NCBI GenBank assembly: GCA_965644495.1
Contig: CBFFSA010000001.1
Coordinates: forward strand, 2,108,001 to 2,172,000
Source of the DNA: Perkinsela sp. CCAP 1560/9
Taxonomy: Eukaryota; Protista; Euglenozoa: Kinetoplastea
Length of the DNA stretch: 64,000 nt
Reading direction: 5' to 3'
In this document: one piece after another, positions 7,798 to 62,475 of the stretch
Position numbering within the stretch: position 1 is the stretch's first letter
Layout: the number at the start of each line of letters is the position of its first letter
Made by a program: the position numbers and the translations under genes
Notes under the pieces: model-generated
The model's database searches: none
What the model was told of the DNA's origin: nothing
Seen by the model: only the letters and a program-made list of their open reading frames with translations

Positions 7798-8574
7798 ATG
7801 TTAGTCTGTGTGAAAGCAGCTGACACCCTCGTAGATTCGCCACCATTGAAGCGCCGACGAGCAGCCAAGGTCCGCGGCACTGCGCTTTCTCCAGACATGG
7901 AAATGCACCGTTTCGTAAATCAAGTCAAAGGAAAACATCGTTCTTGGAAGCCATCAAATCCTATTTCAGAATGGAAGGGTGTGTATGCGATTCATGAAAA
8001 AGTTCTGGAAATCGATTGGGAAAATTTAGGCATTCGTGGCACATTGGATTTTATCTGCTTGCCTTCCTCTCTCAATGTTCTTTCTATTAAGAATGATATT
8101 GTTGCTCTTGAAAAGCTCTCGGGGGCGCCAAGGTTTGATAAACTCCCGGAAAGTCTAAGTACACTAGAGCTCATCAATCACTCATTTAGCGGACAGGTAG
8201 ATCTAACGCATCTCCCTTTGGCTATCACTTACTTTGACATTTCTGGAAACCGATTTACCGGAACGGTGGACTTGACTGCTCTTCCGCCTAATCTTGGCAC
8301 CCTTTTACTCAGTCGCAATGCTCTCAAAGGAGATGTGTGTCTAACCAAGCTCCCTTTATCACTTGTAGTTCTTTCTCTTGGCGAAAACACGTTTACTGGT
8401 TCCCTTGATCTGACACAACTTTCCGGATCCTTGCATACACTGGAGCTCGAATGGAACAAATTTGAAGGCGTTCTAGATCTACGAAAGTTGCCGCCAAGCA
8501 TACAACGTATAGATATCTGTATGAGTGGGTTCGACGGATATGAGGATGACTTTGTTCCCGATGTAGTCGTTTGA
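7798..8574 (+). CDS. 23-aa leucine-rich repeat protein (family copy 1)
   Basis: Repeats LPxxLxxLxLxxNxFxGxxDLxx. N-cap SW...EWKGV. Confidence 0.9.
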   Translation: MLVCVKAADTLVDSPPLKRRRAAKVRGTALSPDMEMHRFVNQVKGKHRSWKPSNPISEWKGVYAIHEKVLEIDWENLGIRGTLDFICLPSSLNVLSIKNDIVALEKLSGAPRFDKLPESLSTLELINHSFSGQVDLTHLPLAITYFDISGNRFTGTVDLTALPPNLGTLLLSRNALKGDVCLTKLPLSLVVLSLGENTFTGSLDLTQLSGSLHTLELEWNKFEGVLDLRKLPPSIQRIDICMSGFDGYEDDFVPDVVV

Positions 8575-8848
8575 GCGAGTCACATGTACATTATAACATT
8601 GTAAATATCATCGTTACATCTTTCCTTTCGTAATTTCAATTTTTGTAGCTAAACCTGGGACAAGAATAAGTCACTCCCCCCCTTACACTTTTCAAAAATG
8701 TTTTTATGTGGATGTTTTACATATCGGCGGGGTCATACTTAGTAATAAAAGGGGGGAACTTCTTCATTTCTTTGACCACCTACGAAGAACATCTTAAACA
8801 ACCCAAAGAAATTATTTTCCCTATTGGTTCCTTCTGTCTTTTTATATT

Positions 8849-9826
8849 ATGCTTCCACAGGATTCTACGGACTGTGTGTTTCCACGGACTTTATGGCATT
8901 TTCAAGGTTCATGGAATGACGTTATAGCACCCCATCCGGTATCCGAGGTTATATGTGACGTTAGTCGAGAACAAGACTCTGAAGTCGAAGATACAACTGC
9001 ACAGACATATCACCGTTCTCTGTACGAAAAAATGCTCTCTGCTATTTCGCCTTCTTTGCGCAATTCTGAACTTTTGTCTGAAGAGCTTTTTTTCTCACAA
9101 TCTAAAACTTTATCGGCATCGAGTGACGATCCTTACGCCACACTTCACAAAGTATTCCGCATTGTAGAACACCTGTCACCGACCCTTCATAATATTTACA
9201 AAGATGTATGTACAGTGAATGAAATCAATAACGTTTCCAAGTCTTGTCTGTCACTTTTACAAACGCTTGATTCCTCACCTCGACTTGAGGCAAGTCTGAT
9301 AGTGGTGTCAGATGCATTCGCGAATGGAGAAGTATGGGCCAATAGCAGATCTCTTCGGTGCGAGTTTTTGAATATTGTTTCTCAGCATTTCACTTCTTTC
9401 TCGTCATCGCCCGTCGACGTATTGTGCGCTTTGCACTTCCGATACCTTACGCAAACTATCGCTTTCGGTGCCGAAAAGCCTTTCCAATGCAAAACTTATT
9501 TTTCTTCGTCAACAGAACCAAATTCTTCGGTATCAAAACCAACTACTCTTTCTGCCGACGTATTATCGCTCGCCGCCACACTTCCACCTGCAGCGGTACA
9601 GTACCTGAAGCAAAGCGAAATAGAAAACATGAATAGCATGACATCGCGACAAGAGTGTGTCGAAGAGGATTTTAAATCCACAATGACTTTCTCTCGAAGA
9701 GCAATCGATCGTTTTACACAAGATTTGCAGCAATGTTCTCGGCATCCAATGCTCATAAACGAAGATGATTTACAATGCACCGAAGATATCACTCCGGGCA
9801 ACGTGGAATCTATATTAACAGTGTGA
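8849..9826 (+). CDS. Hypothetical protein
   Basis: 325-codon ATG ORF after a pyrimidine tract. No recognisable motif. Confidence 0.6.
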   Translation: MLPQDSTDCVFPRTLWHFQGSWNDVIAPHPVSEVICDVSREQDSEVEDTTAQTYHRSLYEKMLSAISPSLRNSELLSEELFFSQSKTLSASSDDPYATLHKVFRIVEHLSPTLHNIYKDVCTVNEINNVSKSCLSLLQTLDSSPRLEASLIVVSDAFANGEVWANSRSLRCEFLNIVSQHFTSFSSSPVDVLCALHFRYLTQTIAFGAEKPFQCKTYFSSSTEPNSSVSKPTTLSADVLSLAATLPPAAVQYLKQSEIENMNSMTSRQECVEEDFKSTMTFSRRAIDRFTQDLQQCSRHPMLINEDDLQCTEDITPGNVESILTV

Positions 9827-10057: not shown

Positions 10058-10909
10058 ATGAGTTTATTCTCTGCTGTGGATATCCAATCTTCATCGCGCA
10101 GGGCCGGTCGAATCCGAGGTGCCGGGCTTCCCCAAGAATATGAACTGTCTCGAGTGGTAAGCAACATTTCGGGCCACTCCCCTACTTGGACAACGGAAAC
10201 ACACGCTTGCAATTGGGAAGGGGTAACCTGTAATGAACAGAAAGAAGTTGACGAAATTGTTTGGCGAAGCATGTCACTTTTGGGAACCATTTCATGGTCA
10301 GACCTTCCTTTAACTTTACGCAGTTTCATCATAGGACATTACTTGTCTATGGGAACGGGGAACGTAATTACTGGAAACCTTCCTACCTCTGATTTACCTC
10401 CTCTTTTAGTGAAGCTTGTGATGGACAACAACAAGGTTGGCGGTGATTTAAAAGTGGAGACGTTTCCTAGACATTTAGAAATCTTTGAGGCGGCAAAGAA
10501 CCGTTTTGCTGGAAGCATTGCACTTTGTACGCTTCCTGCCACATTACAAACGCTAGATCTTCACGACAACTTACTTTCTGGGAACATCAATTTAAGTAAC
10601 TTGTCACCAGAAATGGTTGCCTTATATCTTTCCATGAACTCCTTCCATGGAGAGGTTTGTCTGCGCTCGCTACCTGCAAAACTCCGCTATCTTGACTTGG
10701 ATAAGAATGCTCTCAGTGGGGAAGTTGATCTGTCGAGTCTTCCTGTAACATTGTTTCGCATATCTCTCAATCATAACTCATTTGTTGGAACCGTTGATGT
10801 TCATAACGTCCCTGATTCCATGGATACCCTAGACCTTCGCGGAAACGATTTCACATCTATCGTACCTGTCCCTTACCCTGCGTGTGTCCACTATGACAAA
10901 AAACTATAA
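10058..10909 (+). CDS. 23-aa LRR protein (family copy 2)
   Basis: N-cap TW...ACNWEGVTC followed by 23-aa LRRs. Confidence 0.9.
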   Translation: MSLFSAVDIQSSSRRAGRIRGAGLPQEYELSRVVSNISGHSPTWTTETHACNWEGVTCNEQKEVDEIVWRSMSLLGTISWSDLPLTLRSFIIGHYLSMGTGNVITGNLPTSDLPPLLVKLVMDNNKVGGDLKVETFPRHLEIFEAAKNRFAGSIALCTLPATLQTLDLHDNLLSGNINLSNLSPEMVALYLSMNSFHGEVCLRSLPAKLRYLDLDKNALSGEVDLSSLPVTLFRISLNHNSFVGTVDVHNVPDSMDTLDLRGNDFTSIVPVPYPACVHYDKKL

Positions 10910-11246: not shown

Positions 11247-12218
11247 ATGCGCGTCGCCGTCCTCGGCGCCACCGGCGGCATCGGCCAAGCCCTCTCCCTC
11301 CTCCTCAAACTCCAACTCCCCCACGGCAGCACCCTCCTCCTCTACGACCTCACCGGGGTCCCCGGGGTCGCCACCGACCTCTCCCACCTCGACACCCCCG
11401 TCACCCTCCAGCACGCCCAAGGCACCCTCCCCCCCTCCCCCGACCACCCCGCCCTCGCCGCCCTCCTTGCCCCCGGGGTCGACATCGTGGTGATCTGCGC
11501 CGGGGTCCCGCGCAAACCCGGCATGACCCGCGACGACCTGTTCGCCGTGAACGCCGGGGTCGTCATGGATCTTGTCACCGTCGCCGCAGCAGCCGCCCCC
11601 TCCCCCCCCGTCTTCCTCATCATCACCAACCCGGTGAACTCCACGGTGCCCATTGCCGCGGGCGCCCTCACGCGTCTCGGGAGGTACAACAAGAACCGGC
11701 TGTTTGGGGTCACGACCCTCGATGGGGTCCGGGCGACGACCTTTGTGAATGAGCAACGGGACCCGGTGCGGGTGGAGACGGTGGCGGTGGTCGGGGGTCA
11801 CTCCGGGCCCTCGATCGTGCCGCTGTTCTCGCAGCTCCCCGGGCCGGTGATGGGGCGGGAGGTGCAGGAGGGGTTGGTGCGGCGGGTGCAGGAGGCGGGG
11901 ACGGAGGTGGTGCGGGCGAAGGCGGGGAAGGGGTCGGCGACGCTGTCGATGGCGGAGGCGGGGGCGCGGTTTACGATGTGTGTGGTGAGGGCGTTGAGGG
12001 GGGAGGGGAACCCGCGGGTGTGCAGTTATGTGGATACGGATGGGAGTGCGGCGGTGTCGTTTTTGGCGATGCCGGTGGTGTTGGGGAGGGAGGGGATTGT
12101 GCAACGACTTCCGATTGGGAAGTTGTCGGAGACGGAACAGAGGGCGTTTGAGGTGGCCACGGAGGCGTTGCAGAAGAATATTCAAGACGGGGAGAGGTTT
12201 GTGCAGTCCAAGTTGTAG
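11247..12218 (+). CDS. gMDH: Glycosomal (peroxisomal) malate dehydrogenase
   Basis: VAVLGATGGIGQALSLLL, AGVPRKPGMTRDDLF, ITNPVNSTVP, GVTTLDGVRA, VVGGHSG, KAGKGSATLSMA. C-terminal PTS1 -SKL. Confidence 0.95.
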   Translation: MRVAVLGATGGIGQALSLLLKLQLPHGSTLLLYDLTGVPGVATDLSHLDTPVTLQHAQGTLPPSPDHPALAALLAPGVDIVVICAGVPRKPGMTRDDLFAVNAGVVMDLVTVAAAAAPSPPVFLIITNPVNSTVPIAAGALTRLGRYNKNRLFGVTTLDGVRATTFVNEQRDPVRVETVAVVGGHSGPSIVPLFSQLPGPVMGREVQEGLVRRVQEAGTEVVRAKAGKGSATLSMAEAGARFTMCVVRALRGEGNPRVCSYVDTDGSAAVSFLAMPVVLGREGIVQRLPIGKLSETEQRAFEVATEALQKNIQDGERFVQSKL

Positions 12219-12666
12219 GTAGTGAAGGTGCATAAGTCGTGGGAGGTGGGGGAATAACACGTGGGAGGGAAGTCATGGGCGACATGTGGAATACCGAATG
12301 GTGTCAAAATTTGTTTTAGAAAGGTGATGTTTTCGAAGTTTAGATGTGGCGTCTTAGGCAAAGATGTGCTTTCTTCTGTGCTACATGTTTTGGTTTGTGA
12401 TTATTGTATGTCATACTGGGTTTCTTCAATTGCACTGCTCTTTTGGCTCTTTATATGACGTGCTCATAGTTTTTCGTTGTCGTCTTCGCATCACCAACAA
12501 TGGCGCCTAAATCAACAACGCTCAAATACTCTCGAATAGGGGGACATAATAACGCAATACATACTTTTTATGCTTATTTATTTGTTAACATCCATAGATG
12601 AATAGTTCTTAGACGTATTCTTAGAATTGGCTTTTAACAGGTTTGTTATTTTTTTTCCTGCGTTGT

Positions 12667-13233
12667 ATGCAGAATCCACTACACAATCCACAAGTCCTGG
12701 AGGCATTTACACATGCATCGAAATTCATGTTCAATCGCTCTGGGTGTTTCCACATCATACGTGAGAACGGCGAACACCGACATCGGCACCAAATTTTGGA
12801 CGAGCTAGAGGATGACCTCATTCATTGGTTTTATAGTGAGGGAGAAGTTTATCCGGATGAAATTGAGGCGCATATTCTATCTGTTCTTGCAGATCAACTC
12901 CACACAGAATTAGAAGAGGGTACAGCTCTGGAGATGGGACGACTTTTGCATAATATGTACGTCCGATGCCGCGAAGGAGATTTAAGCTTTTTAGAAGAAA
13001 TTCAAAAAGTAGATACGGGGTCAGATTCCTTAGCTCTCAGAGAGGGACGGGATACGGACACAGTACATGTGGCAGGTTCCGAGACACAAAACTTGGAACC
13101 GAATCCTACGCCAGAAGTGTGTCACGAGAGCAATTTATGTGATTCGAATACACCTATGACTAGAAAACCTCGCTCGCGTGCGCGAAGGCATCAACCCGAC
13201 GCACACGGGTGGCATACGGCAGGGAGATTTTGA
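12667..13233 (+). CDS. TSR2: Pre-rRNA-processing protein Tsr2-like
   Basis: YPDEIEAHILSVLADQLHTELEEGTALEMGRLL...CREGD and a C-terminal DAHGW motif match the Tsr2 (WGG) domain pattern. First ATG at 12667. Confidence 0.7.
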   Translation: MQNPLHNPQVLEAFTHASKFMFNRSGCFHIIRENGEHRHRHQILDELEDDLIHWFYSEGEVYPDEIEAHILSVLADQLHTELEEGTALEMGRLLHNMYVRCREGDLSFLEEIQKVDTGSDSLALREGRDTDTVHVAGSETQNLEPNPTPEVCHESNLCDSNTPMTRKPRSRARRHQPDAHGWHTAGRF

Positions 13234-13475
13234 TTTTTGGTATCCGGGCGTACAGCTGAATCGATTTTGTTCAAAGAGAGTAATCAGGGGTGCTATTATT
13301 TCGTTAGGATCAAGTGAGTTCATCGATCAACATACGTAGCAGTAATACGTATCAATAACGTAGTATCAATAGTCTCATGTTTCCCTATTCAGTATGATTT
13401 CTTTCGACTAGTAGTTTCTCATTTTCTATGAGCTTCCTATCTTCTTGGTTTTCAAACGTCACGATCTGATTTACT

Positions 13476-14939
13476 TTGCGGCTTTCGAAATTTCTTCCTC
13501 GTCGTTCTATACTTCGCAAATCACTTGCTCTTAGTCTTGGATTTGTTGTCTGCTCCACGTATTACTCTGAATCCGAGTTCCTATCCTTGCTTCGGCGATG
13601 CGGTCGCACAGCCCGCGTTGCCTTCCAGGTTGCATGGGCCTACCGAGGAATTCTTGATGATCAGACGCACACCCACGGTGCGAGCCTTGTGTATGATTTA
13701 TGCAGCATAAATGGAGGCGTCTATGTGAAAGCGGCTCAGGTCATTGCGAGTTCCCGTGTTGGAATTCACTGGGCGTATACAGAGAAGCTAAGCGGACTGG
13801 TGGACAGTGCCACCCCGACCCCATATCGTGAAGTTCGAAAAGTGATTTGCAATGAGTTAAAATGCAGCTCGCCGGAAGATCTTTTCGAATTTATTGATCC
13901 GATTCCGGTAGGATGTGCTTCTTTGGCTCAAGTACATCGCGCGAGACTGAAGGGGGAAAGTAGAATCGTGGCGCTTAAGGTGCAGCACCCTCGTCTACAG
14001 TGGGAAATTCCCTGTGACGTGTGGATGCTCAAATGGTGCTTTCGTTCCGCTGAGTTTCTTTTTCCTGGCGCGAAGCTGAGTTTTTTACTCCGACACACTA
14101 GAGAGGGTCTTGCGAAAGAGTTGGACTTTGTAGCTGAAGCTCAGAACATGGAGCGTTGTAGAAACATGTTAAAAAGCTCTAGCGTTGATTGTATTGTACC
14201 AGTTCATTTTCCAAAGCTCTCCACTGAGCGTCTCCTGACAATGGAATATATGAACGGAGTTCGCATCTCCGATGCTAGAAAAGAGTATCGACTTTCATCA
14301 AAGGCATCACAAATCATAGCCAGAAACACTGTTCGACTTTTTGCGGAAATGGTATTTTTGTATGGGTTTGTGCACTGTGATCCACATCCCGGAAACGTAA
14401 TGGTCGAGCCAGAAACACACCGTCTTATACTTCTTGATCATGGGCTATACAGGGAGCTTTCTCCTCGTTTTCAAGAAGCCTATGTCAGCCTTTGGAATGG
14501 CCTTTTTCTTCGTAATGATTCTATTATCGAAAGTGCTTCACGAGATATGGGATCACCGGAGCTTTCCGAGGTATTTTCTCTATTGTTTACGCAGCGCATG
14601 CGAGGTTCTTGGCGCCGTACGGGAAGCACGGATATTATTCAGGCCTTTCAGCAACTTGGGATACTGGGACAGAGCCACACGGGGCAAATTGGAAATGTGA
14701 GTTCGTTGCTTGCAAGTCTCCCTGATGATTTACTCTTTGTCTTGAAAACTGCTATGACGGTGAGATCAGTAACAATGGGGCTCGGATTGGCTGGACCTGA
14801 ACGGCAAGGAGAGTACGCCTGGTGCGCTCATCGTGCACGAATCAAAGGTTTATGGGCTCGTCATGAATGGTTTCGATTTTTCTTTGAAACCATTTGGTTT
14901 CGTTTGGTTTATTTTTTTATCGGTCTGATTCTTGTATGA
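13476..14939 (+). CDS. ADCK1: ABC1/UbiB atypical kinase, ADCK1/5-like; apparent TTG start
   Basis: GGVYVKAAQ, ASLAQVHRA, VALKVQHP, ELDF..EA.N, LTMEY, GFVHCDPHPGN, LLDHGLY. No in-frame ATG before about codon 184. Confidence 0.85.
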   Translation: MRLSKFLPRRSILRKSLALSLGFVVCSTYYSESEFLSLLRRCGRTARVAFQVAWAYRGILDDQTHTHGASLVYDLCSINGGVYVKAAQVIASSRVGIHWAYTEKLSGLVDSATPTPYREVRKVICNELKCSSPEDLFEFIDPIPVGCASLAQVHRARLKGESRIVALKVQHPRLQWEIPCDVWMLKWCFRSAEFLFPGAKLSFLLRHTREGLAKELDFVAEAQNMERCRNMLKSSSVDCIVPVHFPKLSTERLLTMEYMNGVRISDARKEYRLSSKASQIIARNTVRLFAEMVFLYGFVHCDPHPGNVMVEPETHRLILLDHGLYRELSPRFQEAYVSLWNGLFLRNDSIIESASRDMGSPELSEVFSLLFTQRMRGSWRRTGSTDIIQAFQQLGILGQSHTGQIGNVSSLLASLPDDLLFVLKTAMTVRSVTMGLGLAGPERQGEYAWCAHRARIKGLWARHEWFRFFFETIWFRLVYFFIGLILV

Positions 14940-21179: not shown

Positions 21180-22028
21180 ATGAATCACCGCGGTGCTTGG
21201 CTGGCGCAGTTTGCACAGTGTAGTGAAGTCAAGTCCTTTCAAAAGCCCGGAAAAGTGTCTTTAGCAGTGCTTCCTGCTGAACATACGCTACTCCGTTTCG
21301 TGTCAAATCTCACGCATCTCAGAGTTTCATGGATATTGTCGATTCCCGCGTGTTCATGGGACGGAGTTCGGTGTGACAATCTTGCTAATGTGCACGCCCT
21401 ACAGTGGACAAATTTCCACTTGCGTGGGGAACCAAACTGGCACTTTCTCCCGCACACGCTCAAGCGCCTTTATCTTGGGAGTATATCCAACTGGAACTCA
21501 AAATCCTTATCCGAGATCCGCGCATTGGATCCGTTAAAATATTTTTCTTCGCGATCACCCAATCAACTATCGGGAAGTATACTCACAGAGGCGTTGCCAA
21601 ATGAACTGCAATTGTTCGAGGCCTCAGACAATGTTTTTCGAGGCGCGCTGTGCCTCTTGCAGCTCCCACACTCCCTGGTACGTCTGAACGTTGAACAAAA
21701 TGACCTAAGCGGGTCACTAGATTTCTCTCATCTGCCTGTAGTCTTGGAGAGCCTCACATTTAGCGAAAACTCCTTTTCAGGATCTCTTGACCTTTCGCGT
21801 CTTCCGGCGAGTTTGGTGGAGTTAACCGGTGATGACAACCGCTTCAACGGTCCCTTAAATCTTTCGCTGTTGCCGGATAGATTGCAATTTCTCTTTCTTG
21901 GTGGAAATATGCTCTCCGGACATCTTGACGTCTCACGGTTACCGTGTAGTGTGTTAAAGATCTACTTGCCCGGAAATGAGTTCACATCGTGGAATCCCAA
22001 TTCCCTCCCTGAATGTGTGATCCTATAA
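21180..22028 (+). CDS. 23-aa LRR protein (family copy 3)
   Basis: KPGKVSLAVLPAE motif, SW...PACSWDGVRC cap, LRRs. ATG at 21180. Confidence 0.88.
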   Translation: MNHRGAWLAQFAQCSEVKSFQKPGKVSLAVLPAEHTLLRFVSNLTHLRVSWILSIPACSWDGVRCDNLANVHALQWTNFHLRGEPNWHFLPHTLKRLYLGSISNWNSKSLSEIRALDPLKYFSSRSPNQLSGSILTEALPNELQLFEASDNVFRGALCLLQLPHSLVRLNVEQNDLSGSLDFSHLPVVLESLTFSENSFSGSLDLSRLPASLVELTGDDNRFNGPLNLSLLPDRLQFLFLGGNMLSGHLDVSRLPCSVLKIYLPGNEFTSWNPNSLPECVIL

Positions 22029-24204: not shown

Positions 24205-25866
24205 TCTAATTTTGTTAAATGCGTTGCGAAGGGCAGGTTATTAAGTGGTCATTAAGTGAGGGGCTGCGGGTGTGATCTCACATGATTTCACGGCCGGGTG
24301 TTGACATAAAGCCAATCCTGCTCCTCCTACGTCAAATCCTCTCATGAAATTTGAGTTTTTGTGCAAAATCTATGACACTCTTCTCTAAAAAGTGACTGCC
24401 AAGATCAGACCTCATGAGAAATTCAAAAATTGAACAAAAAAAAATGTTTCTCACCCCAAATTGACAACTTTTAATTAAAAAAAACAATATAAACCCCTGG
24501 CCAAAATAAGGCACCCCCCTCTAAAAATTCGATGCTTTGTTTGTTTGAGCTAATTTCAATGGCATTTTGCAGATCTCAGTTCGGGATTTATGTCCTCCCA
24601 CACTTGGTCACTAGTCCTCTAGCTATTTATAAAGTGGAAACTATTTACCACTTTTTTACCTTTTCGCCACCTAGTTCGACGCAGGCCTTCAGTCTACGAT
24701 CGAAACTTAAGATGGTATCATTTATCATCTCAGTCGGTAAAGAACTCCATGTGTTTAGAATACACCTTTGCAGTTCGGAAACTGTAGATGGTAGCTTTTC
24801 ATTTACGTCTTGTTGTACCATTGACCATATGTTTTCAATGGGAGAAAGATCGGGAGAATTTGGGGGCCAATTTTTTAGTAGATTAATTTTTCGTTTGTTC
24901 AGGTAATTTATGGTGGCCTTGGCCGTATGAGCGGTGGCACCATCTTGTTGAAATATTCTTTTGCGGGGGAAATAAACATGTTTTAGTGTGTCTATGTATG
25001 TTTCGTGGGCAATAGAGGTCCTGCTGGATAAATTTTTAAGCATCTCCAGTTAATTCCTATAGCACCCCACACCTGACACTTAGGCGCCCAGCGCACCTTT
25101 AGTCTCTTTGCAGGGGTCTCTCCTTTTTTTACCCACATTTTCATTCGATTATCGTTTGTATCAAACACCTTCTCATCTGAGAATATCAATTTCGATGTGT
25201 CCTCTTTGTAATTTAAAGAAAACTGTACGCGTTTTTCTTTTTGTACAGCGGTGAGCCCTTGTGAAATTGGTCGTGGCCTATATTGATGCCCTGCTTGCCT
25301 CAAATCTCGACGAACAGTTCGAGGGCTTGCAGTAACACCCTTTCTGCACAAAACAACAGAAATACGCTTTGAACTGTACTTTGGCACCCCTGCCGCATCT
25401 TTCTTAGAAATAATGGTTTCAATCCTTTTTTTTACGAGACTTTATTTTTTTTTTCTGTGGGGATTTCTTTAGGCTTTTTTTCGTCTCAATTTTGGGGTGA
25501 TCACGGAGGTATTTTCGAATGTATTTCACGCTTACATTCAATTCACGTGCTATTCGTTTCTTTGGGATGCCATCTTGAAACCTTAAAAGCATGAGTTCCT
25601 TCCCCAGGGGGCTGAGGCCACCTTTCGGAGGCCTGCGGAATGATTTTTTCATAAATCGACCCTAATGTTAAAGTGGTAAAATGTTTTTTTTTCATGAGCT
25701 AAAAACAGCGGGAACGTACAGATCTCAAAATTTTGAACGAAAACATGGTATGATAACCCTACCATACCCCCTCATGCAAAAAATAAGGGGGGGTGCCTTA
25801 TTGGTGGCCAGGGATTTATTTTGTGCCATGATTTTTAGCGATAAAATTTTTTTGCTTGGGTGTATT
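24205..25866. repeat. Interspersed repeat R1 (24205-24489 plus 25819-25866), split by a Tc1-like insertion
   Basis: Reverse complement of the uninterrupted copy at 58321-58652. Confidence 0.85.
24490..25818 (-). mobile_element. Near full-length Tc1/IS630-superfamily transposon, DD35E transposase broken by two 1-nt indels
   Basis: TIRs TAaacccctggccaaaataaggcacccccct / aggggggtgccttattggtggccagggattTA. ORF pieces 25419-25652 (HTH), 24992-25387 (FSDEK) and 24645-25043 (FQQDGATAH...WPPNSPDLSPIENIW). Empty site seen at about 58365. Confidence 0.92.
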
Positions 25867-26859: not shown

Positions 26860-27585
26860 TAAACCCCCGCTCACGAAAAGTGACCCCCCTCTTTTTTTTC
26901 GTACAAATGTCCGTTTGAGCTGTTTTTTGTGCACTTTGCAGATCTCAACACAAGGACTTTGCGTGTGCAGAAATGAGACAAAAAGAAACGAATATGCACA
27001 ATTTAGAGAAGAATTACCATTTTGTCACTTTTTCGCCCTTCAATCTTATGCACTCCTTAAGTCGAGAATCAAAACTTAATACTGTTTTGTCGATCACTTT
27101 TTGAGTTAAAGAAGACCATGCTTTACGTGCACATCGGATAAGTGAAGGTTTGTCCGATGGGGTTTGTTCGTCTACCGCCTCTTGGACCATAGACCAGACG
27201 TTTTCTATGGGGGAAAGGTCGGGCGAGTTGGGGGGCCAGTTTCTTAGAACATCACTCATTCAATTCTCAATATACTCTTTGGAGGCACGGGCAGTATGTG
27301 CCGTTGCCCCATCCTGTTGAAATACACTATTAGGGGGGAAATCTAGCTGTTTTAATGTTTCTATGTACGTCTCACTTGTAATAGATGTGTCATTGTAGAT
27401 GTCTCACTTGTAATAGATGGTCACAGGACTCAAAGTGTATTCCCCGCTAGATTTTTTTTCGTTCAGATATTTTTTGATTATCCTTCTAGAGACGTTAAAA
27501 TCACGGGATAATTGTTTTATCGGAACACCTTCTGCCTGTCTCATCTTCAAAAGAACCTTACCACTATCCGTAAGCCCCCCTTTTA
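26860..27585 (-). mobile_element. Internally deleted Tc1-like transposon remnant (DD35E, paralogue of the 24.5-kb element)
   Basis: KGGLTDSGKVLLKMRQAEGVPIKQLSRDFNVS (HTH) at about 27420-27580. VFQQDGATAHTARASKEYIEN*MSDVLRNWPPNSPDLSPIENVW. Left end TAaacccccg. Flanks are contiguous in the copy at 51080-51228. Confidence 0.85.
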
Positions 27586-32459: not shown

Positions 32460-33380
32460 ATGGCCACCGTTCAACTTCTTCACTCGGCTGACGACCAACC
32501 TACCTCCGCTGGCCGCCGGCCTGCAAAGACCAGAGGCACTGCCCTCCCACCCGAAATCGACCTCATCCGTTTTCTCCAAGACAACACGGAGGAGATTCAC
32601 ACCACGTGGAGTTCCGAGATCCCAGCATGTAAGTGGCACGCGGTGAAATGTGACGAACACTACCACATTGTAGAGATCAACTGGGGCAGTAAGAAGCTCT
32701 CCGGGGAGGTGGGGTGGCCCCACCTTCCTCGCTCCCTCCAGCGTCTTGATTTGTCCGTGAATGCGCTCTCCGGGGAGCTCTGCACCCAAGTCCTCCCCTC
32801 CCCCCTCGTGAGCCTCACCCTGTTTAACAACACCCTCTCCGGAGCGGTGAACTGGAAAGGGTTACCCCGTGGGTTACGTCACCTCCACCTGGCGAATAAC
32901 CAGCTCTCCGGACCGATTCAACTCGAGGATATGCCCTACGGGCTGCGTGAGATTGTCCTTGCCCAGAACCTGTTCGTGTCCGGGATTGATCTCGCAGAAC
33001 TCCCCCCTCAGCTCCAAATGATAAATCTGAATCAAAATCATTTAACCGGGGAGATCGCACTGACGGAGCTCCCACCGAGTCTATGTGTACTCAGCGCGAA
33101 CCGAAATGGGTTCACGGGAAGTGTTGATTTCTCCTCCCTCCCCCCGAATCTCTATCGCCTGTGTTTGAGGGATAACGCCCTAAGTGGGGTGCTGGATTTG
33201 CGTAAGTTGGGTAGAAGACTGAGTGCCCTGGACGTGCGACATAACATGTTTGAAGGTAAGGTGCTGTGGTCGAAGAATGTGACCAACCTGTGTAAAAAAT
33301 TTAAGTTTGGTGGAAATAAACTTTGTGGTTTTGATCCTGCGGATATTGACGAGTGCCTCATTGTGGGAAAGCAAGGTTAG
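32460..33380 (+). CDS. 23-aa LRR protein (family copy 4)
   Basis: SADD...RRPAKTRGTALPPE motif, TW..EIPACKWHAVKC cap, about 9 LRRs. Confidence 0.9.
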   Translation: MATVQLLHSADDQPTSAGRRPAKTRGTALPPEIDLIRFLQDNTEEIHTTWSSEIPACKWHAVKCDEHYHIVEINWGSKKLSGEVGWPHLPRSLQRLDLSVNALSGELCTQVLPSPLVSLTLFNNTLSGAVNWKGLPRGLRHLHLANNQLSGPIQLEDMPYGLREIVLAQNLFVSGIDLAELPPQLQMINLNQNHLTGEIALTELPPSLCVLSANRNGFTGSVDFSSLPPNLYRLCLRDNALSGVLDLRKLGRRLSALDVRHNMFEGKVLWSKNVTNLCKKFKFGGNKLCGFDPADIDECLIVGKQG

Positions 33381-34550: not shown

Positions 34551-35423
34551 ATGTTTTGGTCTGTTAGGATTTTCATACGCCTTGAAGACAACACAAAGAC
34601 ATATCGTAAACCGAGCAAAGTGCGTGGAACTGATCTACCTCCTGTGGTTCAACTCGCCCGTTTGGTCAGCAATATTACCAATCCACATGAAACATGGAAT
34701 ACCGAAGTTCATCAATGCCTTTGGTCTGGAATACAATGCGCAACTCTAGACCGTACTCAGGTCCGATCTCTGTTTTGGTCGGATAGAAATCTTTTTGGGA
34801 GCTTGCTTTTGAATTACTGTCCTTCCACTCTTCTTTCCATTGATGTGAGCGAAAATCAGTTAGAAGGTTCACTTCCGTGCTCATTGCTACCCGACGGACT
34901 CCGAGACCTAATACTACGACGCAATCAATACACGGGGCCTCTTGATTTTACTCAACTTCCCATGGCCCTAATTAACTTAGATATTAGATCAAATATGTTT
35001 TCGGGTGGTGCGAATCTTATGAAACTTCCTCCTTCCTTGGATTTGCTCTGGATGAGGTCAAATTTGTTTTCCGGTGCGTTGTTGCTCTCACACCTTCCGA
35101 CCTCTCTGCGCGCCCTCGGGAGCTCACGTAATCTTTTTCAAGGTCCACTAAATTTAACGCACCTTCCCCTTAAATTGGCAAGTCTACATCTAAATCGCAA
35201 CCAATTTTCCGGTGAGCTAGATCTTACAAGGTTACCCAATAGTTTGGACGCGCTTGTTTTGGACCGAAATCAGTTTACAGGTAGAGTGGATCTCCGATCG
35301 CTTCCAGAGGGTATGGATCTTCTCGATATTTCTCATAATTATATCACATCCGTCGCTGATAAACATATTCCAGACTGGGTGAAGATTCGTCCCCAAAAGC
35401 GCCCCACCACTTCAAATGTTTAG
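34551..35423 (+). CDS. 23-aa LRR protein (family copy 5)
   Basis: RKPSKVRGTDLPP motif, TW...QCLWSGIQC cap, LRRs. ATG at 34551. Confidence 0.9.
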   Translation: MFWSVRIFIRLEDNTKTYRKPSKVRGTDLPPVVQLARLVSNITNPHETWNTEVHQCLWSGIQCATLDRTQVRSLFWSDRNLFGSLLLNYCPSTLLSIDVSENQLEGSLPCSLLPDGLRDLILRRNQYTGPLDFTQLPMALINLDIRSNMFSGGANLMKLPPSLDLLWMRSNLFSGALLLSHLPTSLRALGSSRNLFQGPLNLTHLPLKLASLHLNRNQFSGELDLTRLPNSLDALVLDRNQFTGRVDLRSLPEGMDLLDISHNYITSVADKHIPDWVKIRPQKRPTTSNV

Positions 35424-36978: not shown

Positions 36979-37962
36979 ATGCGGCCCTCATTTCTGCTCT
37001 TTTGCATTCATTGTTCTGTTCTTGCAGTGGCTCAAGACAGCACTGCACTTTCTACTTTGAGCTCATCACTATCTGCAGAACACGAACTTGAAATTTTTCT
37101 CAAAAACATTCACAACTGGCATCATACATGGGATCTACAAAATCCCATCCGATCTTGGAAAGGTATTTACTGTAACGATCAAGGAGAGCTCACACAAATT
37201 GATTGGCGGTATATGCGACTCCAAGGAAATCTTACTTGGAGGCACATCCCACCTCATATTGAAACCTTATGCCTCCGAGAGAATGATCTTCAAGGTACCA
37301 TTCAACTTTGTGATCTTCCGCCCCGATTAAAAGTCTTGCTTCTTGACAGTAATCATTTTCGTGGCCACCTTTACTTAGAGGAATTACCATGGCAAATTCG
37401 TGTGCTACGTGTTGGTCACAACGCTTTGGGTGGTCCACTTGAAATTCCTTTTTCTCATCCTGTATTACGTGAGCTTCACGTCGAGTACAATGCTTTCCAC
37501 GGTACGTTGGATCTTGAACAGCTGCCACTTCGGTTGCGAATTCTTGACGTCACTCAAAACAACCTTAGCGGAGACCTAAACTTGACTTTTCTTCCCAGCG
37601 GCCTCAACGTCCTTTCCGTGGCATACAACACATTTTCGGGTGGTGTTTATTTAAGTCAGCTTCCTTTCGAATTGCGCGTTTTGAATCTGAGCCATAACCA
37701 ACTTGATACCGGAGTTGACCTTCAACGTCTTCCCGTTGAACTTGAAGAACTCTATTTGAACCACAATTATTTTTTTGGTAGGCCGAAACTTCTTGAATTG
37801 TCTCCTTTCTTAAGAGTACTTCACCTTCACAATAATTGTTTTCGGGGTTACATTGATGTTTCCCATGTAAATCATAAAACCGAGATACGAATTTATCCTC
37901 AACGAGAGACTTTTGTGCGAACCTATGTGAGAACAAAGCCTGAACCTTGCTGTGTGTCCTAA
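36979..37962 (+). CDS. 23-aa LRR protein (family copy 6) with a signal-peptide-like N-terminus
   Basis: Hydrophobic leader MRPSFLLFCIHCSVLAVA-QD, TW...RSWKGIYC cap, about 9-10 LRRs. Confidence 0.9.
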   Translation: MRPSFLLFCIHCSVLAVAQDSTALSTLSSSLSAEHELEIFLKNIHNWHHTWDLQNPIRSWKGIYCNDQGELTQIDWRYMRLQGNLTWRHIPPHIETLCLRENDLQGTIQLCDLPPRLKVLLLDSNHFRGHLYLEELPWQIRVLRVGHNALGGPLEIPFSHPVLRELHVEYNAFHGTLDLEQLPLRLRILDVTQNNLSGDLNLTFLPSGLNVLSVAYNTFSGGVYLSQLPFELRVLNLSHNQLDTGVDLQRLPVELEELYLNHNYFFGRPKLLELSPFLRVLHLHNNCFRGYIDVSHVNHKTEIRIYPQRETFVRTYVRTKPEPCCVS

Positions 37963-42302: not shown

Positions 42303-42480
42303 TTTATAACTGGCTTTCGGTTGATAACTGGCATGCGGTTGATAACTGGCTTTCGGTTGATAACTGGCTTTCGGTTCATAACTGGCTTTTCGTTGATAAT
42401 TGGCTTTTTGTTGATAACTGACTTTTTGTTGATAACTGGCTTTTTGTTGATAACTGGCTTTTTGTTGATAACTGGCTTTG
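42303..42480. repeat. 18-bp tandem array, 10 units (ttgataactggcttt(cgg/ttg))
   Basis: Directly visible. Extra unit at 42521 and a TIR-like end actgataaagggggggtccaat-TA at about 42672-42694. Confidence 0.9.
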
Positions 42481-42839
42481 AATGGGTTTAGTTGGCGTAC
42501 TTTCACTTTCTTGGGTCCTTTTGATAACTGGATTTTGAAATGGGGGCGGACTCTTTGAAGTCACATTCGACGACCAGACCCCCGCCTTGGAAAATCCCGG
42601 CCTCCTCGTGCGTTGCTCGCCCCACGGGACACTCGCGCTGAAGAAAAGCGCCCAGGACGAGATTTGTTAAAACTGATAAAGGGGGGGTCCAATTATTATT
42701 CACATCCATTTACTATTCACAAACTCATTTACTATTCACATTCATCTACTATTCACAAACAATTATTTGTTAAAAAAAATTACCCTTCCTTCTTTACGTG
42801 ACTTGAGTTCGAAAGAAACTCGAAAAAATCTTGTACCTC

Positions 42840-45617: not shown

Positions 45618-46397
45618 ATGAAATGTACATGCTCTGATCTCCCCCGTGTTCGTCCAAGTAAGGTTTCTTCCCAAAATCTTCCTGCTGAGTTCTATCTTGC
45701 ATCTTTTACCCGAAATTTAACAGGCAGAGATGCCAGTTGGACACAGTACACGATGTCACCGTCGTGGCCGGGTATCGTGTACGACGAGTTAGGCGGCGTT
45801 TCTGATATTCGGTGGTACAGCCTTTCGCTTTATGGCACTCCACAGTGGGCTGCGTTACCTCAGGGCTTGGAAGTTCTCAACATTCAGGAAGTCTTAATTT
45901 CTGGTTGTTTGCCTGTTTCCGACCTTCCCAGTGGGCTTCGTCTACTTGTTCTTGATAATACTTCTTTAAAGGGGGAAGTGGATATGACAGTGCTTCCTCA
46001 AAATCTAGTTCATATGTCCTTGGCGAACAATTATTTTTTTGGGTCTGTGAATCTGGGAAATCTTCCCATCACTTTGATGTTCTTGTCTCTTCATGGCAAT
46101 GTTTTTAACGGTACGATCAGCTTAAATAAATTGCCTCCTCAAATGGAAACATTGGACGTGTCTCACAACAAGTTTTGTGGAGACTTCGATTTATCTTTGC
46201 TGCCAGTAACCATGCAACGTATCTTTGCACTAGCTAATCACTTTGACGGGGAGCTTGACCTAACCTCACTACCTGAGAGCATGATTCGCGTTAGTGTTTG
46301 CCGTGATAATTTTGCCAAAGCAACGGTACCTGCTGGATGGGTGTACAACCTAAATCTCATGGGAGGATACGGTAAGAAACCCTCTCGAATCACCTAA
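45618..46397 (+). CDS. 23-aa LRR protein (family copy 7)
   Basis: CSD...RPSKVSSQNLPAE motif, LRRs. ATG at 45618. Confidence 0.88.
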   Translation: MKCTCSDLPRVRPSKVSSQNLPAEFYLASFTRNLTGRDASWTQYTMSPSWPGIVYDELGGVSDIRWYSLSLYGTPQWAALPQGLEVLNIQEVLISGCLPVSDLPSGLRLLVLDNTSLKGEVDMTVLPQNLVHMSLANNYFFGSVNLGNLPITLMFLSLHGNVFNGTISLNKLPPQMETLDVSHNKFCGDFDLSLLPVTMQRIFALANHFDGELDLTSLPESMIRVSVCRDNFAKATVPAGWVYNLNLMGGYGKKPSRIT

Positions 46398-52245: not shown

Positions 52246-52962
52246 ATGTGTCGTCCTATATGTTCTGCTGATTCCTCCTCCGTACCACGAGGAAAAATAC
52301 GGTTTTCTTTACTGCCATCTGAGCAACGCATGAAGCAAGTTGTAGAAGGTGTCACAAATCCTCACCCCAGCTGGAAACACGTCAGAAAAAACTTCTGGGG
52401 AACTGCCAAAGCAGTTTCTCCTTGCACCTGGCACGGTATTCTGTGTGATGCGCGGCATGAGATTAGGGAAGTTAAATGGGACTATAGGCATTTGGAAAGG
52501 ACACTACAAGGAAATTTTTCTTTCTTATGGCTTCCAGAAACTTTGCTTCGGTTACATCTTTCTGTCCATCTACTCGGAGGTGAATTAGATCTATCCTCAC
52601 TTCCACAAGCCGCAATGACGTATCGATTGAAACGAAATTTATTTACGGGGGAAATAAATCTTACCCAACTTCCTCCTATTTTGAAAGCTCTTTCGGCGCA
52701 ACACAATCGGTTGACTGGTCTTGTCGACCTAAACTACCTACCCGAAGGATTTCTATCGCTAAATTTAAGTTACAACCGGATACGAGGCACCGCTGATCTT
52801 ACTCACCTTCCTAGGGGAATACGAAAACTGTCACTAAAAACAACTGAAATCTCGAGTCTCAATTATCCTGATGCTCGACCCAGCGCAGCTTTTGTAGCGG
52901 ATCTCACAGGAAACCTTATAAAGGAGGCAAAAGGGAATAAACAAAGCTTCGTCCGGATTTAA
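52246..52962 (+). CDS. 23-aa LRR protein (family copy 8)
   Basis: CSAD...RGKIRFSLLPSE motif, HPSW...PCTWHGILC cap, LRRs. Confidence 0.88.
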   Translation: MCRPICSADSSSVPRGKIRFSLLPSEQRMKQVVEGVTNPHPSWKHVRKNFWGTAKAVSPCTWHGILCDARHEIREVKWDYRHLERTLQGNFSFLWLPETLLRLHLSVHLLGGELDLSSLPQAAMTYRLKRNLFTGEINLTQLPPILKALSAQHNRLTGLVDLNYLPEGFLSLNLSYNRIRGTADLTHLPRGIRKLSLKTTEISSLNYPDARPSAAFVADLTGNLIKEAKGNKQSFVRI

Positions 52963-54058: not shown

Positions 54059-54760
54059 ATGGATTACAATAGATGCGCTTCTCGAGCTGGAAAGATAACT
54101 TCAATAAATTTGCCACCAGAAATTGAGCTCGGAAGATTGATTCAAGATGTAAAGAGCACACATCGCTCCTGGTTTTCTGAAAAGTCTGCCTGCGATTGGG
54201 ACGGTGTAAAGTGCAACAAACTCTTAGACGTGATTGAGATATCTTGGAGTTTTCGCGAATTAAAAGGAAACATAAACTTAGATTTTCTTCCGCGTTCTGT
54301 TATTAAATTTTCTGTGGGAAAGAACTTTCTTTTAGGTGAAGTACAATGGAGGCACTTGCCTCCTAATTTGACGGAACTAAATTTGTACAGCAATGAATTT
54401 ACGGGCACCGTGGATTTAACCAGACTTCCCGATGGCATAACCTGGATGAAGCTTTCCAGTAACAAATTTTTCGGTCCTGTATCCCTTACTAGCCTTCCAT
54501 CTCACCTGTCATACCTCAGTCTTCAAAGTAATAAATTTACTGGAACTCCCGATCTTCGAAAACTCCCTTTAACATTAAACGGATTAAATTTATCGAACAA
54601 TTGCTTGCAGGGACGCGTATTCTTTTGTTCCTTGCCTTCCAGTTTGTCGAATTTATTTCTGCAAGATAATAAGAAATTGTTTGGGGATTATGACCGAAAG
54701 CAACTTCCTAGAGGTCTGCGTTTGTTTGTCCAAAACACTGAAATTGTTAAGATAGTATGA
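54059..54760 (+). CDS. 23-aa LRR protein (family copy 9)
   Basis: RAGKITSINLPPE motif, HRSW...SACDWDGVKC cap, LRRs. ATG at 54059 (upstream GTG at 54029). Confidence 0.88.
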   Translation: MDYNRCASRAGKITSINLPPEIELGRLIQDVKSTHRSWFSEKSACDWDGVKCNKLLDVIEISWSFRELKGNINLDFLPRSVIKFSVGKNFLLGEVQWRHLPPNLTELNLYSNEFTGTVDLTRLPDGITWMKLSSNKFFGPVSLTSLPSHLSYLSLQSNKFTGTPDLRKLPLTLNGLNLSNNCLQGRVFFCSLPSSLSNLFLQDNKKLFGDYDRKQLPRGLRLFVQNTEIVKIV

Positions 54761-58652: not shown

Positions 58653-58667
58653 TACAAGATAGATATA

Positions 58668-61297: not shown

Positions 61298-61650
61298 ATT
61301 GTATTTTCTTTATCTGGCACTATCGCTTCTCCATGTTCTATGAGTAGTCGATTGTTTTGAACGCGTTCAAAACTTGGTCGGGCACCTTGCAATAGTTTTC
61401 AGTTGCTAGCTTTAGATACAATGTAAATAGAACTTCCGGTTAGAACTGGTTTGACTTATCTTTGGACCTTACGTTTCAGATTACAAAAAGTGGTGGTTCA
61501 GCATTTTAGAGCTTTTATTATGCAATATTTTGATTCGTGAATTATGCGATGTAAAGCAAGATATTCTCGCATTTCTGCACTTCATGTTTTGATTTTTACT
61601 GTTCAGCTCTCGCTCTTTTTTTGTACTGCGTCTAATTTTATCATTCTTAG

Positions 61651-62475
61651 ATGGCCGACGAACAGCCTCGTTCTTCTACTCGTATTGGAAAGGTGGGTGG
61701 AGCATCACTGCCCCAGGAATTTTCATTAGATCTTTTTCTTCGTAACGTCACGAACCGACGTCCGTCATGGTGTACCTCTACGCCAGCGTGTCAGTGGAAT
61801 GGTGTCACTTGCACGCAGGAACAAGTTCGCGCAATTCATTGGGACGGACACAATCTCCGAGGGACAATCTTATGGTCTCATCTTCCGGTCACTACCGCGG
61901 AGCTTTCTTTGGGATCTCTTTGGAGTGGTTATAACCGAAATACTCTTAGCGGTCCAATACACGTTGAAGTCCTTCCTCCCCAACTCTCTCGATTGGACTT
62001 ACATACTAATGCTTTTACCGGGGAAATTAGATTTGCCAATCTTCCTCCTGGTCTCGAGTATTTGGGTGTTTCGCAGAATGATTTGCACGGCAGCGTTGAT
62101 TGGACTCTACTTCCACAAGGGCTTATCTCTCTGAGACTCGATCAAAACTCATTTTCGGGTCAAATCTTTCTGACTTCACTTCCATCATGTCTGAGTACTT
62201 TGACTGTAAGTACGAACATGTTTGAAGGTCCGGTTATTCTTACCGAGCTTCCTTCTACATTAACCTTCTTAAACTTATCAAAAAATAAGCTATCGGGAAG
62301 TCTTGATCTAAGAAGACTACCCTTGCGATTGCTCTACATCTATCTGAACGAAAATCATTTTAATGGACTAATAAATCTCTCTCTTCTCCCTCCATCATTA
62401 AAATTGCTCAATGTTCAAAATACCTCTGTTGAAACACTCTCTTCCCCACCTGATGGATGCGCATTATTTGTTTGA
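61651..62475 (+). CDS. 23-aa LRR protein (family copy 10)
   Basis: MAD...RIGKVGGASLPQE motif, PSW...PACQWNGVTC cap, LRRs. Confidence 0.9.
   Translation: MADEQPRSSTRIGKVGGASLPQEFSLDLFLRNVTNRRPSWCTSTPACQWNGVTCTQEQVRAIHWDGHNLRGTILWSHLPVTTAELSLGSLWSGYNRNTLSGPIHVEVLPPQLSRLDLHTNAFTGEIRFANLPPGLEYLGVSQNDLHGSVDWTLLPQGLISLRLDQNSFSGQIFLTSLPSCLSTLTVSTNMFEGPVILTELPSTLTFLNLSKNKLSGSLDLRRLPLRLLYIYLNENHFNGLINLSLLPPSLKLLNVQNTSVETLSSPPDGCALFV

Follow-up and report, generated by a model that had tools for sequence, protein, structure and literature searches.

LRR genes between housekeeping genes

The window, by which we mean the whole 64,000-nucleotide stretch of DNA analysed here, contains exactly ten LRR-only genes, all of them intact and on the + strand, and no further LRR clusters are present in it, in agreement with the earlier note. 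Their products are 233-327 aa long, inside the range of 230-330 aa given before, and each copy has 4-9 recognizable units of 23 residues. Start codons were assigned by polyY/AG geometry only: each gene was taken to begin at the first ATG that follows the polypyrimidine (polyY) tract and AG in front of it. The copies are as divergent as had been described, with pairwise identities of 29-45% (median 34%). Pfam detects in them the LRR families and LRRNT_2 (PF08263) and nothing else; no 19-residue stretch has transmembrane-like hydropathy, the maximum (1.52) lying inside the leader of the copy that starts at 36979.

LRR gene 1 (7798..8574) encodes 258 aa and has the basic N-terminal motif together with the LPxE-equivalent at 7858-7896; an NLS-like SPPLKRRR stretch precedes the motif, and both cap cysteines are gone. 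Gene 2 (10058..10909, 283 aa), which was used for AlphaFold model 1, has the motif at 10100-10138 and the cap at 10127-10231. The third gene (21180..22028) specifies 282 aa when read from the ATG that follows the polyY tract, with the motif at 21243-21281 and a CaaX-like C-terminus, CVIL. Gene 4 (32460..33380, 306 aa, motif at 32517-32555) provided AlphaFold model 2, and it is followed by gene 5 (34551..35423, 290 aa, motif at 34608-34646). Gene 6 (36979..37962) is the exception, since its 327-aa product, with CCVS as its C-terminus, has no basic residue where the motif would lie (37042-37080). Both cap cysteines are gone in gene 7 as well (45618..46397, 259 aa, motif at 45651-45689), and gene 8 (52246..52962, 238 aa) combines a motif variant, GKIRF (52285-52323), with a longer cap loop. 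The motif of gene 9 (54059..54760, 233 aa; motif at 54083-54121) begins only 8 residues past the start codon, while gene 10 (61651..62475, 274 aa, motif at 61681-61719) starts with M-A-D-E and has no hydrophobic leader. A protein identical to the gene 10 product is present on a 181-kb ENA contig.

The adjoining housekeeping genes are those for COQ4, MCM, glycosomal MDH, ABC1, PPR, DNA polymerase subunit B and UDG, and another neighbor encodes a HAT/TPR-repeat protein with HAT domains of the pre-mRNA-splicing-factor type. The description of the LRR genes as scattered singly is correct for the window, where they lie between these housekeeping genes, but it does not extend to the rest of the genome, in which dense tandem clusters occur too. 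The family is spread over many contigs (1359 first-look candidates and 182 scored matches) and accounts for a few percent of the 21-Mb genome. It is lineage-specific and comprises several hundred or more small proteins, possibly over a thousand, in each of which an LRRNT-like cap is followed by 4-10 LRRs of the plant type, 23 residues long. A copy number of 250-660, extrapolated from the frequency of a strict pattern, was discarded as biased by cluster sampling. No paper describing the LRR family or its motif was found in the literature.

Fold, cap and binding face

The consensus of the 23-residue unit is L-P-x-x-L-x-x-L-x-L-x-x-N-x-F-x-G-x-V-D-L-x-x, with N13 kept in 98%, G17 in 97% and P2 in 94% of the units and a spacing of exactly 23 residues in 224 cases out of 260. 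The cap is LRRNT-like, as claimed, and its motif (helix, W, C-x-W-x-G-V-x-C) is near-invariant in alignments A1, A2 and A4. PF08263 matches five of the ten copies (E 1e-4 to 1e-2), one of them above the curated cutoff of 20.7 bits (22.7 bits) and four just below it, including one at 20.5 bits. A Foldseek search with an AlphaFold model (pLDDT 93) returned 185 PDB matches at E<=1e-3; among those listed, plant receptor ectodomains and PGIP lead, with E as low as 2e-10 and TM as high as 0.74. The likeness to plant LRR ectodomains and LRR-only proteins (PGIP 1OGQ, PSKR, HAESA, MIK2, TMK3) concerns the fold and the cap type, Pfam LRRNT_2. In contrast to the family described here, the plant proteins are secreted or membrane-anchored, have units of 24 instead of 23 residues and two cap disulphides, and only a signal peptide precedes their cap helix. 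Membership in the F-box-LRR class was rejected, because no F-box (PF00646) was detected at E<=0.01 and the region after LPxE is modeled as one helix plus a loop, LRRNT-like, rather than as three helices.

The cysteines of the family point in two directions. The two cysteines of the cap are kept or lost together (both in 141 members, neither in 14, one in 7), the pattern that a disulphide formed in the secretory pathway would give, and this argues against a cytosolic origin. On the other hand, even and odd cysteine counts are found in 88 and 76 members, respectively, with no bias toward even numbers, and CaaX-like boxes terminate about 7% of the members; both features fit a cytosolic origin.

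A dN/dS comparison of position classes, along the lines proposed earlier for the LRR face, gave an omega of 0.93 at concave positions versus 0.46 at convex x (other exposed) positions (p about 0.01), with 0.12 at scaffold positions, as measured on six independent young pairs. These values support diversification of the concave LRR face at a near-neutral rate, and the family members are candidates for a varied binding repertoire. Positional entropy across all 224 units was abandoned as a measure of selection; all x positions are saturated (3.0-4.0 bits) and hence uninformative, which is why the dN/dS of young pairs was used instead.

The N-terminal motif and the leaders

Nine of the ten window copies carry the eight-residue motif R-x-[GAS]-K-[VI]-[RS]-G-[AT] directly ahead of the LPxE helix of the cap, as first noticed from the DNA letters; all eight motif strings quoted at that time were recovered exactly, and the ninth copy (7798) reads RAAKVRGT. 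The logo of 57 copies from the same genome is R-x-[GAS]-K-V-R-G-A-x-L-P-Q-E, with 2.0-2.9 bits at each motif position. The motif is far beyond chance: the codon pattern of KVRGAxLP has 92 matches in the 21-Mb genome and that of RxGKVRGA has 40, versus 0 in the control for either. It is present in 142 of the best 150 public cluster representatives. The motif tail is translated and under purifying selection; in the genome matches the third codon positions are free and arginine is specified by both CGN and AGR codons, and in young paralogue pairs the identity of the motif (85%) equals nearly that of the cap helix (86%), versus 53% for the leader.

Upstream of the motif, the [S/A]-D element reported earlier is real (83 of 153 N-termini, versus a mean of 41 in shuffles) but looser than claimed; of the nine window copies with the motif, about six show it clearly. 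Within the 285 kb sampled (1.4% of the genome, with 200 kb plus six loci as the additional DNA examined), the motif was sought on non-LRR proteins and found only on the LRR family, each PSSM match of at least 15.5 bits lying ahead of an LRR cap or of an LRR pseudogene. When metagenomes were scanned with the N-terminal alignment A3, 46 pattern matches appeared, none of which was confirmed as a relative. Several known signals were also compared with the motif and rejected. The PTS2 consensus for glycosomal import, [RK]-[LVI]-x5-[HQ]-[LA] near the N-terminus, fails at positions 8-9 after K-V, which are P-Q and not [HQ]-[LA]; the RVxF, 14-3-3, cyclin RxL, myristoylation and F-box readings were dismissed for mismatch between their consensuses and the logo.

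The leaders that precede the motif are short, with a median of 11 residues and a median uncharged run of 5, and several copies begin directly at M-[AS]-D. According to a hydropathy heuristic, an h-region is absent in nine of the ten window copies, while a minority of the family members have h-regions of 10-15 residues. The start codons lie just downstream of a polyY tract and AG, and the longer, signal-peptide-like ORF extensions upstream of some paralogues coincide with polypyrimidine tracts; they probably represent the trans-splicing signal and are probably untranslated. The leader and [AS]-D themselves were also considered as merely a translated trans-splicing signal. This reading was discarded, since in most copies no further Met is available ahead of the cap, and the polyY tract and AG lie upstream of the ATG.

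The copy at 36979 departs from this picture in the way first described: it has TALSTLSS at the motif position, with no basic part, and a hydrophobic leader (36979..37035) in which a short and basic n-region is followed by about 15 uncharged residues and then by small residues ahead of Q-D-S. This leader must be translated, given that no Met occurs later ahead of the cap. The nearest paralogues all keep the motif, and consequently its replacement by a signal-peptide-like leader in 36979 is a single derived event. The two elements do coexist elsewhere, as some members and relatives combine a signal-peptide-like leader with the motif; in the protein P0008 of a relative the leader is strong. A more distant protist lineage has a homologous but non-basic variant, L-G-R-[VL]-D, which is net neutral.

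About one sixth of the proteins (10 of 59 local copies and 26 of 141 public representatives) possess an NLS-like insert, P-x-x-KRRK-[VQ], located 20-30 residues upstream of the motif and present in the window in the copy at 7798. A genome count of the KRRK codon pattern (40 versus 2 in the control) was set aside as not clean, since about half of the matches are identical 24-mers of a repeated element.

Whether the motif belongs to the fold of the cap, as the earlier note asked, was addressed with two AlphaFold models, built on 53- and 101-sequence alignments, in which it appears unstructured, with a pLDDT of about 52-70, while the domain reaches 93-98. The pLDDT is about 52 over residues 1-20 of model 1, in model 2 the first three blocks of ten residues have 54, 62 and 78, and neither model assigns secondary structure ahead of the cap helix. 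Furthermore, the internal cap modules of the multi-module proteins P0007 and P0008 occur without the motif. Both results support its description as a conserved, apparently non-structural N-terminal element. Low pLDDT is not proof of disorder, and the small residues G(-3) and A(-2), as well as V(-5), could pack on the cap.

Origin of the family and role of the tail

The best named relative of the family is the LRRNT_2 protein of Neobodo designis (UniRef A0A7S1LZM3; P0002), with E 2e-72 versus the family profile. It shares the 23-residue unit, L-P-x-x-L-x-x-L-D-L-x-x-N-x-F-x-G-T-V-D-L, and the C-x-W-x-G-V-x-C cap, but differs in having a canonical signal peptide, a Cys-rich extra N-terminal domain and a Cys-rich C-terminus, and in lacking the basic tail and any known expansion. 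Because this homologue keeps its signal peptide, the family probably descends from classically secreted LRR proteins. Most copies here would then retain a short leader remnant ending in [AS]-D, reminiscent of a former signal-peptidase junction, followed by the eight-residue tail immediately before the cap helix. The LRR proteins would be made in the cytosol, and one partner common to them all, involved in docking, sorting or processing, would recognize the tail as a short linear motif. A wide range of binding specificities would come from the concave face, changing at its near-neutral rate, and a subfamily would add the classical P-x-x-KRRK nuclear-import-like signal. The final site of the proteins may be the cytosol or nucleus of the cell itself, its surface or vesicles, or a host cell. 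This reading, a family-specific N-terminal linear motif for docking, sorting or processing on cytosol-made LRR binders, is the best available explanation, and we give it about an even chance of being right.

The tail might instead be a structural extension of the cap, lying against the N-terminal end of the solenoid or plugging it, and selection would then preserve it solely for the sake of folding or stability. Its conservation at the level of the cap helix in young pairs, the invariant G, A and V, which are typical packing residues, its confinement to this fold in the 285 kb sampled and the rise of pLDDT to 78 in the decade with the last motif residues of model 2 would all be explained in this way. 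We consider it unlikely nevertheless, as the pLDDT stays at 52-62 across most of the motif in the two models, with no secondary structure, the internal caps, the Neobodo homologue and copy 36979 have an intact cap sequence without the motif, and plant LRRNT caps have no equivalent. It is very improbable that the members are true secretory proteins, with the short leader acting as a signal peptide that is cut off at [AS]-D and the motif serving as a pro-peptide site (basic at -9, -6 and -4, cut after R(-4)). The [AS]-D junction obeys the -1/-3 small-residue rule after a hydrophobic run, a minority of members have the 10-15-residue h-regions, the cap cysteines are co-conserved and the ancestor was secreted; yet most leaders offer just 4-6 uncharged residues, several copies start straight at M-[AS]-D, the longer hydrophobic extensions are probably untranslated, many cysteines are unpaired and some C-termini are CaaX-like, and R(-4) is missing in the lineage with the non-basic variant. 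Least probable is a nuclear family for which the basic motif itself is the localization signal. The tail is basic, and with the KRRK insert upstream in about one sixth of the members it could form a bipartite signal, but the invariant G, V and A do not characterize importin-alpha ligands, a K-[KR]-x-[KR] core is missing from the motif, the homologous variant is net neutral, and a motif sufficient by itself would make a separate KRRK insert superfluous.

A bolder proposal, which goes back to the earlier note and which we regard as doubtful though worth stating, is that the tail is a new, signal-peptide-independent host-targeting or sorting signal of a kinetoplastid that may be endosymbiotic or intracellular. 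The family would have left classical secretion, as retained in Neobodo, when its lineage moved inside a host; the tail would export the LRR proteins to the host cytosol, where the LRRs would bind host molecules, and the KRRK subfamily would proceed to the host nucleus. Several observations are favorable. The tail is N-terminal, conserved and apparently unstructured and closely follows a vestigial leader, the family is very large with a diversifying concave face, and the sole copy that gained a signal peptide (36979) lost the motif. A search of the genome for the flagellar markers PFR and IFT57 found no match to either family, the MDH tree places this kinetoplastid beside Perkinsela and PhF-6, and the nearest protein-atlas clusters are labeled Euglenozoa and Discosea, the class of Paramoeba. 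In the secretomes of Leishmania and Trypanosoma, moreover, most proteins have no signal peptide. The Perkinsela genome paper itself speculates that the endosymbiont secretes proteins into its host (PMC5601477). Against the proposal, the MDH is just 64% identical to that of Perkinsela, and no LRR units were found in the syntenic 20 kb of Perkinsela; the homologous variant in another lineage is non-basic, and P0008 joins a signal-peptide-like leader to the motif. The analogy to PEXEL (Plasmodium) and RxLR-dEER (oomycetes), which are short conserved motifs tens of residues from the N-terminus and ahead of a variable effector domain, is a poor one. The tail matches neither R-x-L-x-[EQD] nor R-x-L-R, as its R-to-L spacing is 4 and not 2; the upstream ER signal sequence that both systems need is absent in most members by the hydropathy heuristic; and PEXEL and RxLR occur on many unrelated effector families, unlike the motif, which was seen on no other protein class in the sampled DNA.

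LRR proteins that enter host cells are known from bacteria. The bacterial YopM, IpaH/SspH and GALA proteins are LRR-only or LRR-plus-adaptor effectors that enter host cells, some of them reaching the nucleus, by means of N-terminal unstructured secretion signals outside the fold; however, they use type III secretion, belong to different LRR classes and are not homologous to the family here. A further comparison is with the LRR families of the microsporidia Spraguea lophii and Trachipleistophora hominis, which are the largest lineage-specific expansions in these small genomes of intracellular eukaryotes and have been proposed as host-interaction factors, with no predicted secretion signal in the T. 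hominis family (PMC3749934). Their sequences are unrelated, the families are much smaller (97 ORFs) and, in contrast to the strong motif found here, the authors state that they detected no conserved targeting motif (PMC3749934).

Large, fast-diversifying LRR families recur in intracellular eukaryotes. In the family described here, the single N-terminal tag borne by nearly every member, which can be written as a pattern, offers a directly testable handle on the way in which such a set of binders is put to use in a deep-branching and perhaps endosymbiotic kinetoplastid, and natural contrasts are at hand in the one copy that lost the tag and gained a signal peptide and in a free-living relative with the ancestral secreted form. 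The finding also bears on the evolutionary re-routing of a secreted family.

Gene content and affiliation

Every long ORF of the window lies on the + strand, and housekeeping ORFs among them encode COQ4, an MCM, malate dehydrogenase (MDH), an ABC1 kinase, a PPR protein, a DNA polymerase B-subunit, UDG and a HAT/TPR-repeat protein with HAT domains of the pre-mRNA-splicing-factor type. The MDH ends in SKL; its nearest solved structures are two MDH entries, presumably the trypanosomatid glycosomal enzymes, and its nearest named protein is the glycosomal MDH of Perkinsela sp. CCAP 1560/4 (64%). In the MDH tree, the window falls outside the well-supported Neobodo/Bodo/trypanosomatid clade, and its position, adjoining the Perkinsela + PhF-6 clade, is unresolved. 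The window (11247-14939) and Perkinsela CCAP 1560/4 (L031/L032) have one gene order in common: MDH, a small ORF, then the ABC1 kinase. Searches of the 21-Mb genome gave 0 matches to the paraflagellar-rod family and 0 to IFT57. Given the tree placement, the synteny and these missing matches, the organism is probably a deep-branching kinetoplastid without a flagellum; it is not close kin of the published Perkinsela.

In Perkinsela, UDG lies on the opposite strand directly upstream of MDH; in the window it is on the same strand as MDH, 46 kb downstream, and an LRR gene is found upstream of MDH instead. No LRR unit lies in 20 kb of sequence surrounding the syntenic Perkinsela MDH, no named Perkinsela protein is among the matches of the LRR family searches, and the Perkinsela genome paper (PMC5601477) makes no mention of an LRR family. 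In the protein atlas, clusters that resemble the LRR protein carry the labels Euglenozoa and Discosea, the class holding Paramoeba; this hints at a paramoebid association but does not prove it. Three sets of Tc1/mariner-type transposase fragments (24645-25652, 27014-27259 and 27986-28755, minus strand; DDE-region strings such as W-P-x-x-S-P-D-L-x-P-I-E-N) sit in the stretch, poor in genes, that separates LRR gene 3 from the following housekeeping gene, and tandem heptapeptide-repeat ORFs of the N-R-K-P-V-I and K-A-S-Y-Q-Q types (42101-42506, minus strand), in the gap before LRR gene 7, suggest a tandem DNA repeat of ~21 bp.

The LRR family and its basic motif

Exactly ten LRR-only genes are present, as the earlier note had counted. 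In all ten, a polypyrimidine tract and AG precede the assigned ATG by 0-100 nt, and because of the position of these signals four starts were set further downstream than in the mechanical ORF list. The proteins are 233-327 aa long, with 29-45% pairwise identity and 4-9 recognisable units each; Pfam returned nothing beyond LRR families and LRRNT_2 for them, and the claim that they lack a transmembrane segment holds. The basic motif reported for nine copies is indeed found in 9/10, directly before L-P-x-E, with all quoted strings correct, and copy 36979 has the hydrophobic leader ascribed to it (15 residues), with no basic residues at the motif position. A 9-codon upstream ORF (36949-36981) overlaps the 36979 start codon in a TAATG arrangement.

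A search with one window copy gave 1359 first-look candidates, of which 182 were scored matches; they are spread over many contigs of the genome, mostly in open frames of 260-350 aa. The 59 local members come from the window, one relative's contig and 200 kb outside the window. Of 260 unit spacings, 224 are 23 residues. The logo anchored on the L of LPQE reads R(-9) x [GAS] K V R G A x L P Q E Y [EQ] L A R F, with 2.0-2.9 bits per position in the basic part. The strict codon patterns KVRGAxLP and RxGKVRGA matched the genome 92 and 40 times, respectively, versus 0 for either reversed control. Third codon positions vary freely and arginine derives from both codon families, which indicates selection at the protein level. 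Furthermore, a search of 1.84 billion proteins with a 74-column N-terminal profile retrieved 886 cluster representatives (365 at E<=1e-10), and helix, cap and logo are alike in 142 of the best 150; the ten representatives looked up all come from ENA assemblies, one being identical to copy 61651. The motif observation is borne out, and it applies genome-wide. Single open frames of 640-880 aa that combine at least two cap-plus-LRR modules also occur (contig positions C11:439268-440182, C1:3698407-3699741, C1:1271108, C1:639767 and C10:239799-241547).

When a PSSM of the eight basic-motif positions was run on all six frames of 285 kb, each match of at least 15.5 bits preceded an LPxE helix and cap or sat in an obvious LRR pseudogene, and weaker matches fell in frames with stop codons.

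Cap, leader and site of action

The solenoid has pLDDT 93-98 in the AlphaFold models of copies 10058 and 32460 (alignments of 53 and 101 sequences, respectively). Values are ~52 over residues 1-20 of the former and 54, 62 and 78 for the first three decades of the latter, and neither model assigns secondary structure ahead of the cap helix. The earlier note had asked whether the motif is part of the cap fold; it appears unstructured, as far as a model can tell order from disorder. In the public multi-module proteins P0007 and P0008 the first module alone has the motif; their internal caps, the Neobodo designis homologue and copy 36979 do without it, so the cap sequence is independent of the motif. 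Young paralogue pairs are 85% identical in the motif and 86% in the cap helix, versus 53% in the leader and 60% in the cap loop. Taken together, the models, the motif-less caps and this conservation would favour a short, conserved linear motif over a structural element; a structural extension of the cap, conserved along with its helix, is unlikely.

The segment before the motif (median 11 residues, median uncharged run 5) often ends in [AS]-D: it does so in 83 of 153 N-termini, where shuffles average 41. This element usually lies 5-12 residues ahead of R(-9), and hydrophobic residues are enriched just before it. The segment looks like a signal-peptide stump with an A-x-A/D cleavage junction, in line with the full signal peptide seen in the Neobodo homologue and with several members that begin exactly at M-[AS]-D. 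Longer hydrophobic extensions in some ORF calls overlap polypyrimidine tracts and are probably untranslated. A classical secretory pro-peptide site would suit such a junction; it is improbable, and a usable signal peptide is missing in most copies. This absence was counted toward a cytosolic origin, as were cysteine counts without even-number bias (88 even, 76 odd) and CaaX-like ends, with Cys at -4, in 12/164 members versus 2.2% expected (p = 4e-4). Counted against it were the two cap cysteines, which are retained or lost as a pair (141 both, 14 neither, 7 one), and the few members in which the motif follows a signal-peptide-like leader. Most proteins in kinetoplastid secretomes have no signal peptide, and the missing signal peptide is therefore compatible with release. 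Export by the motif would be a live special case of a linear motif, albeit unlikely; the proposed analogy to PEXEL/RxLR fails on the definitions of those signals. Nor does the family match the definitions of F-box-LRR proteins or PTS2.

The CaaX-like C-termini (22014-22028 and 37948-37962 in the window, and in loci L014, L015, L016 and L019; boxes CVIL, CCVS, CVKL, CVKM, CVTI, CVRI and CRIV) suggest possible prenylation of this sub-family, which would be a cytosolic modification. About one-sixth of members (10/59 local, 26/141 public representatives) have an insert [ST]-D-x-x-E-P-x-x-KRRK-[VQ] between leader and motif that reads as a textbook monopartite NLS, and copy 7798 has a version of it (7837-7860); for the motif itself, an NLS role is very improbable. 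The insert also occurs in loci L002, L003, L006, L017, L019, L020 and L021 and in the public protein P0003, often beside an S/T-P-x-K/R site, like CDK-regulated classical NLSs, and the sub-family is old and present in two relatives' contigs too. An identical 24-mer encoding E-P-I-S-K-R-R-K lies at at least 12 places on many contigs (C1:1430316, C2:960145, C8:98830 and C28:26226 among them), and two more identical 24-mers recur 6 and 3 times in the genome; they probably belong to a repeated element of recent origin that has no relation to the LRR family.

Evolution and probable role

In six non-overlapping young paralogue pairs, with five concave-face positions per unit, omega is 0.12 for the scaffold, 0.46 for non-concave variable positions and 0.93 for the concave face (concave versus convex, Fisher p = 0.0095). 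Concave omega is indistinguishable from 1 in these pairs. When the window's genome is compared with contig L001 of a relative, it drops to ~0.2; binding surfaces therefore change rapidly once a gene is duplicated and are conserved thereafter. All the nearest paralogues of 36979 (35% identical) have the motif, so its signal peptide is a single derived gain coupled with motif loss.

A distant intron-poor protist (ENA ERZ25071330, 957-kb contig L028, and ERZ25074155, L033), whose Rpt5 is 66% identical to that of the window's genome, carries the same LRR family in tandem arrays. There the N-terminus is homologous and net-neutral (hydrophobic leader, [SA]-x-D, [AG]-L-G-R-[VL]-D, x3, [LM]-S-x-Q), which makes G-[KR]-[VIL] the old conserved core, lying four residues ahead of L-[PS]; the strongly basic character is specific to the window's lineage.

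The family groups with plant-type LRRNT-capped LRR proteins in fold and repeat type but lacks their defining extracellular signal. The closest biological analogues are the expanded LRR families of microsporidia, in which a conserved targeting motif was not found (PMC3749934). The most likely reading of the sequences, at about an even chance, is that the motif would be a family-private N-terminal linear motif for docking, sorting or processing, carried by diversifying LRR binders of cytosolic synthesis.
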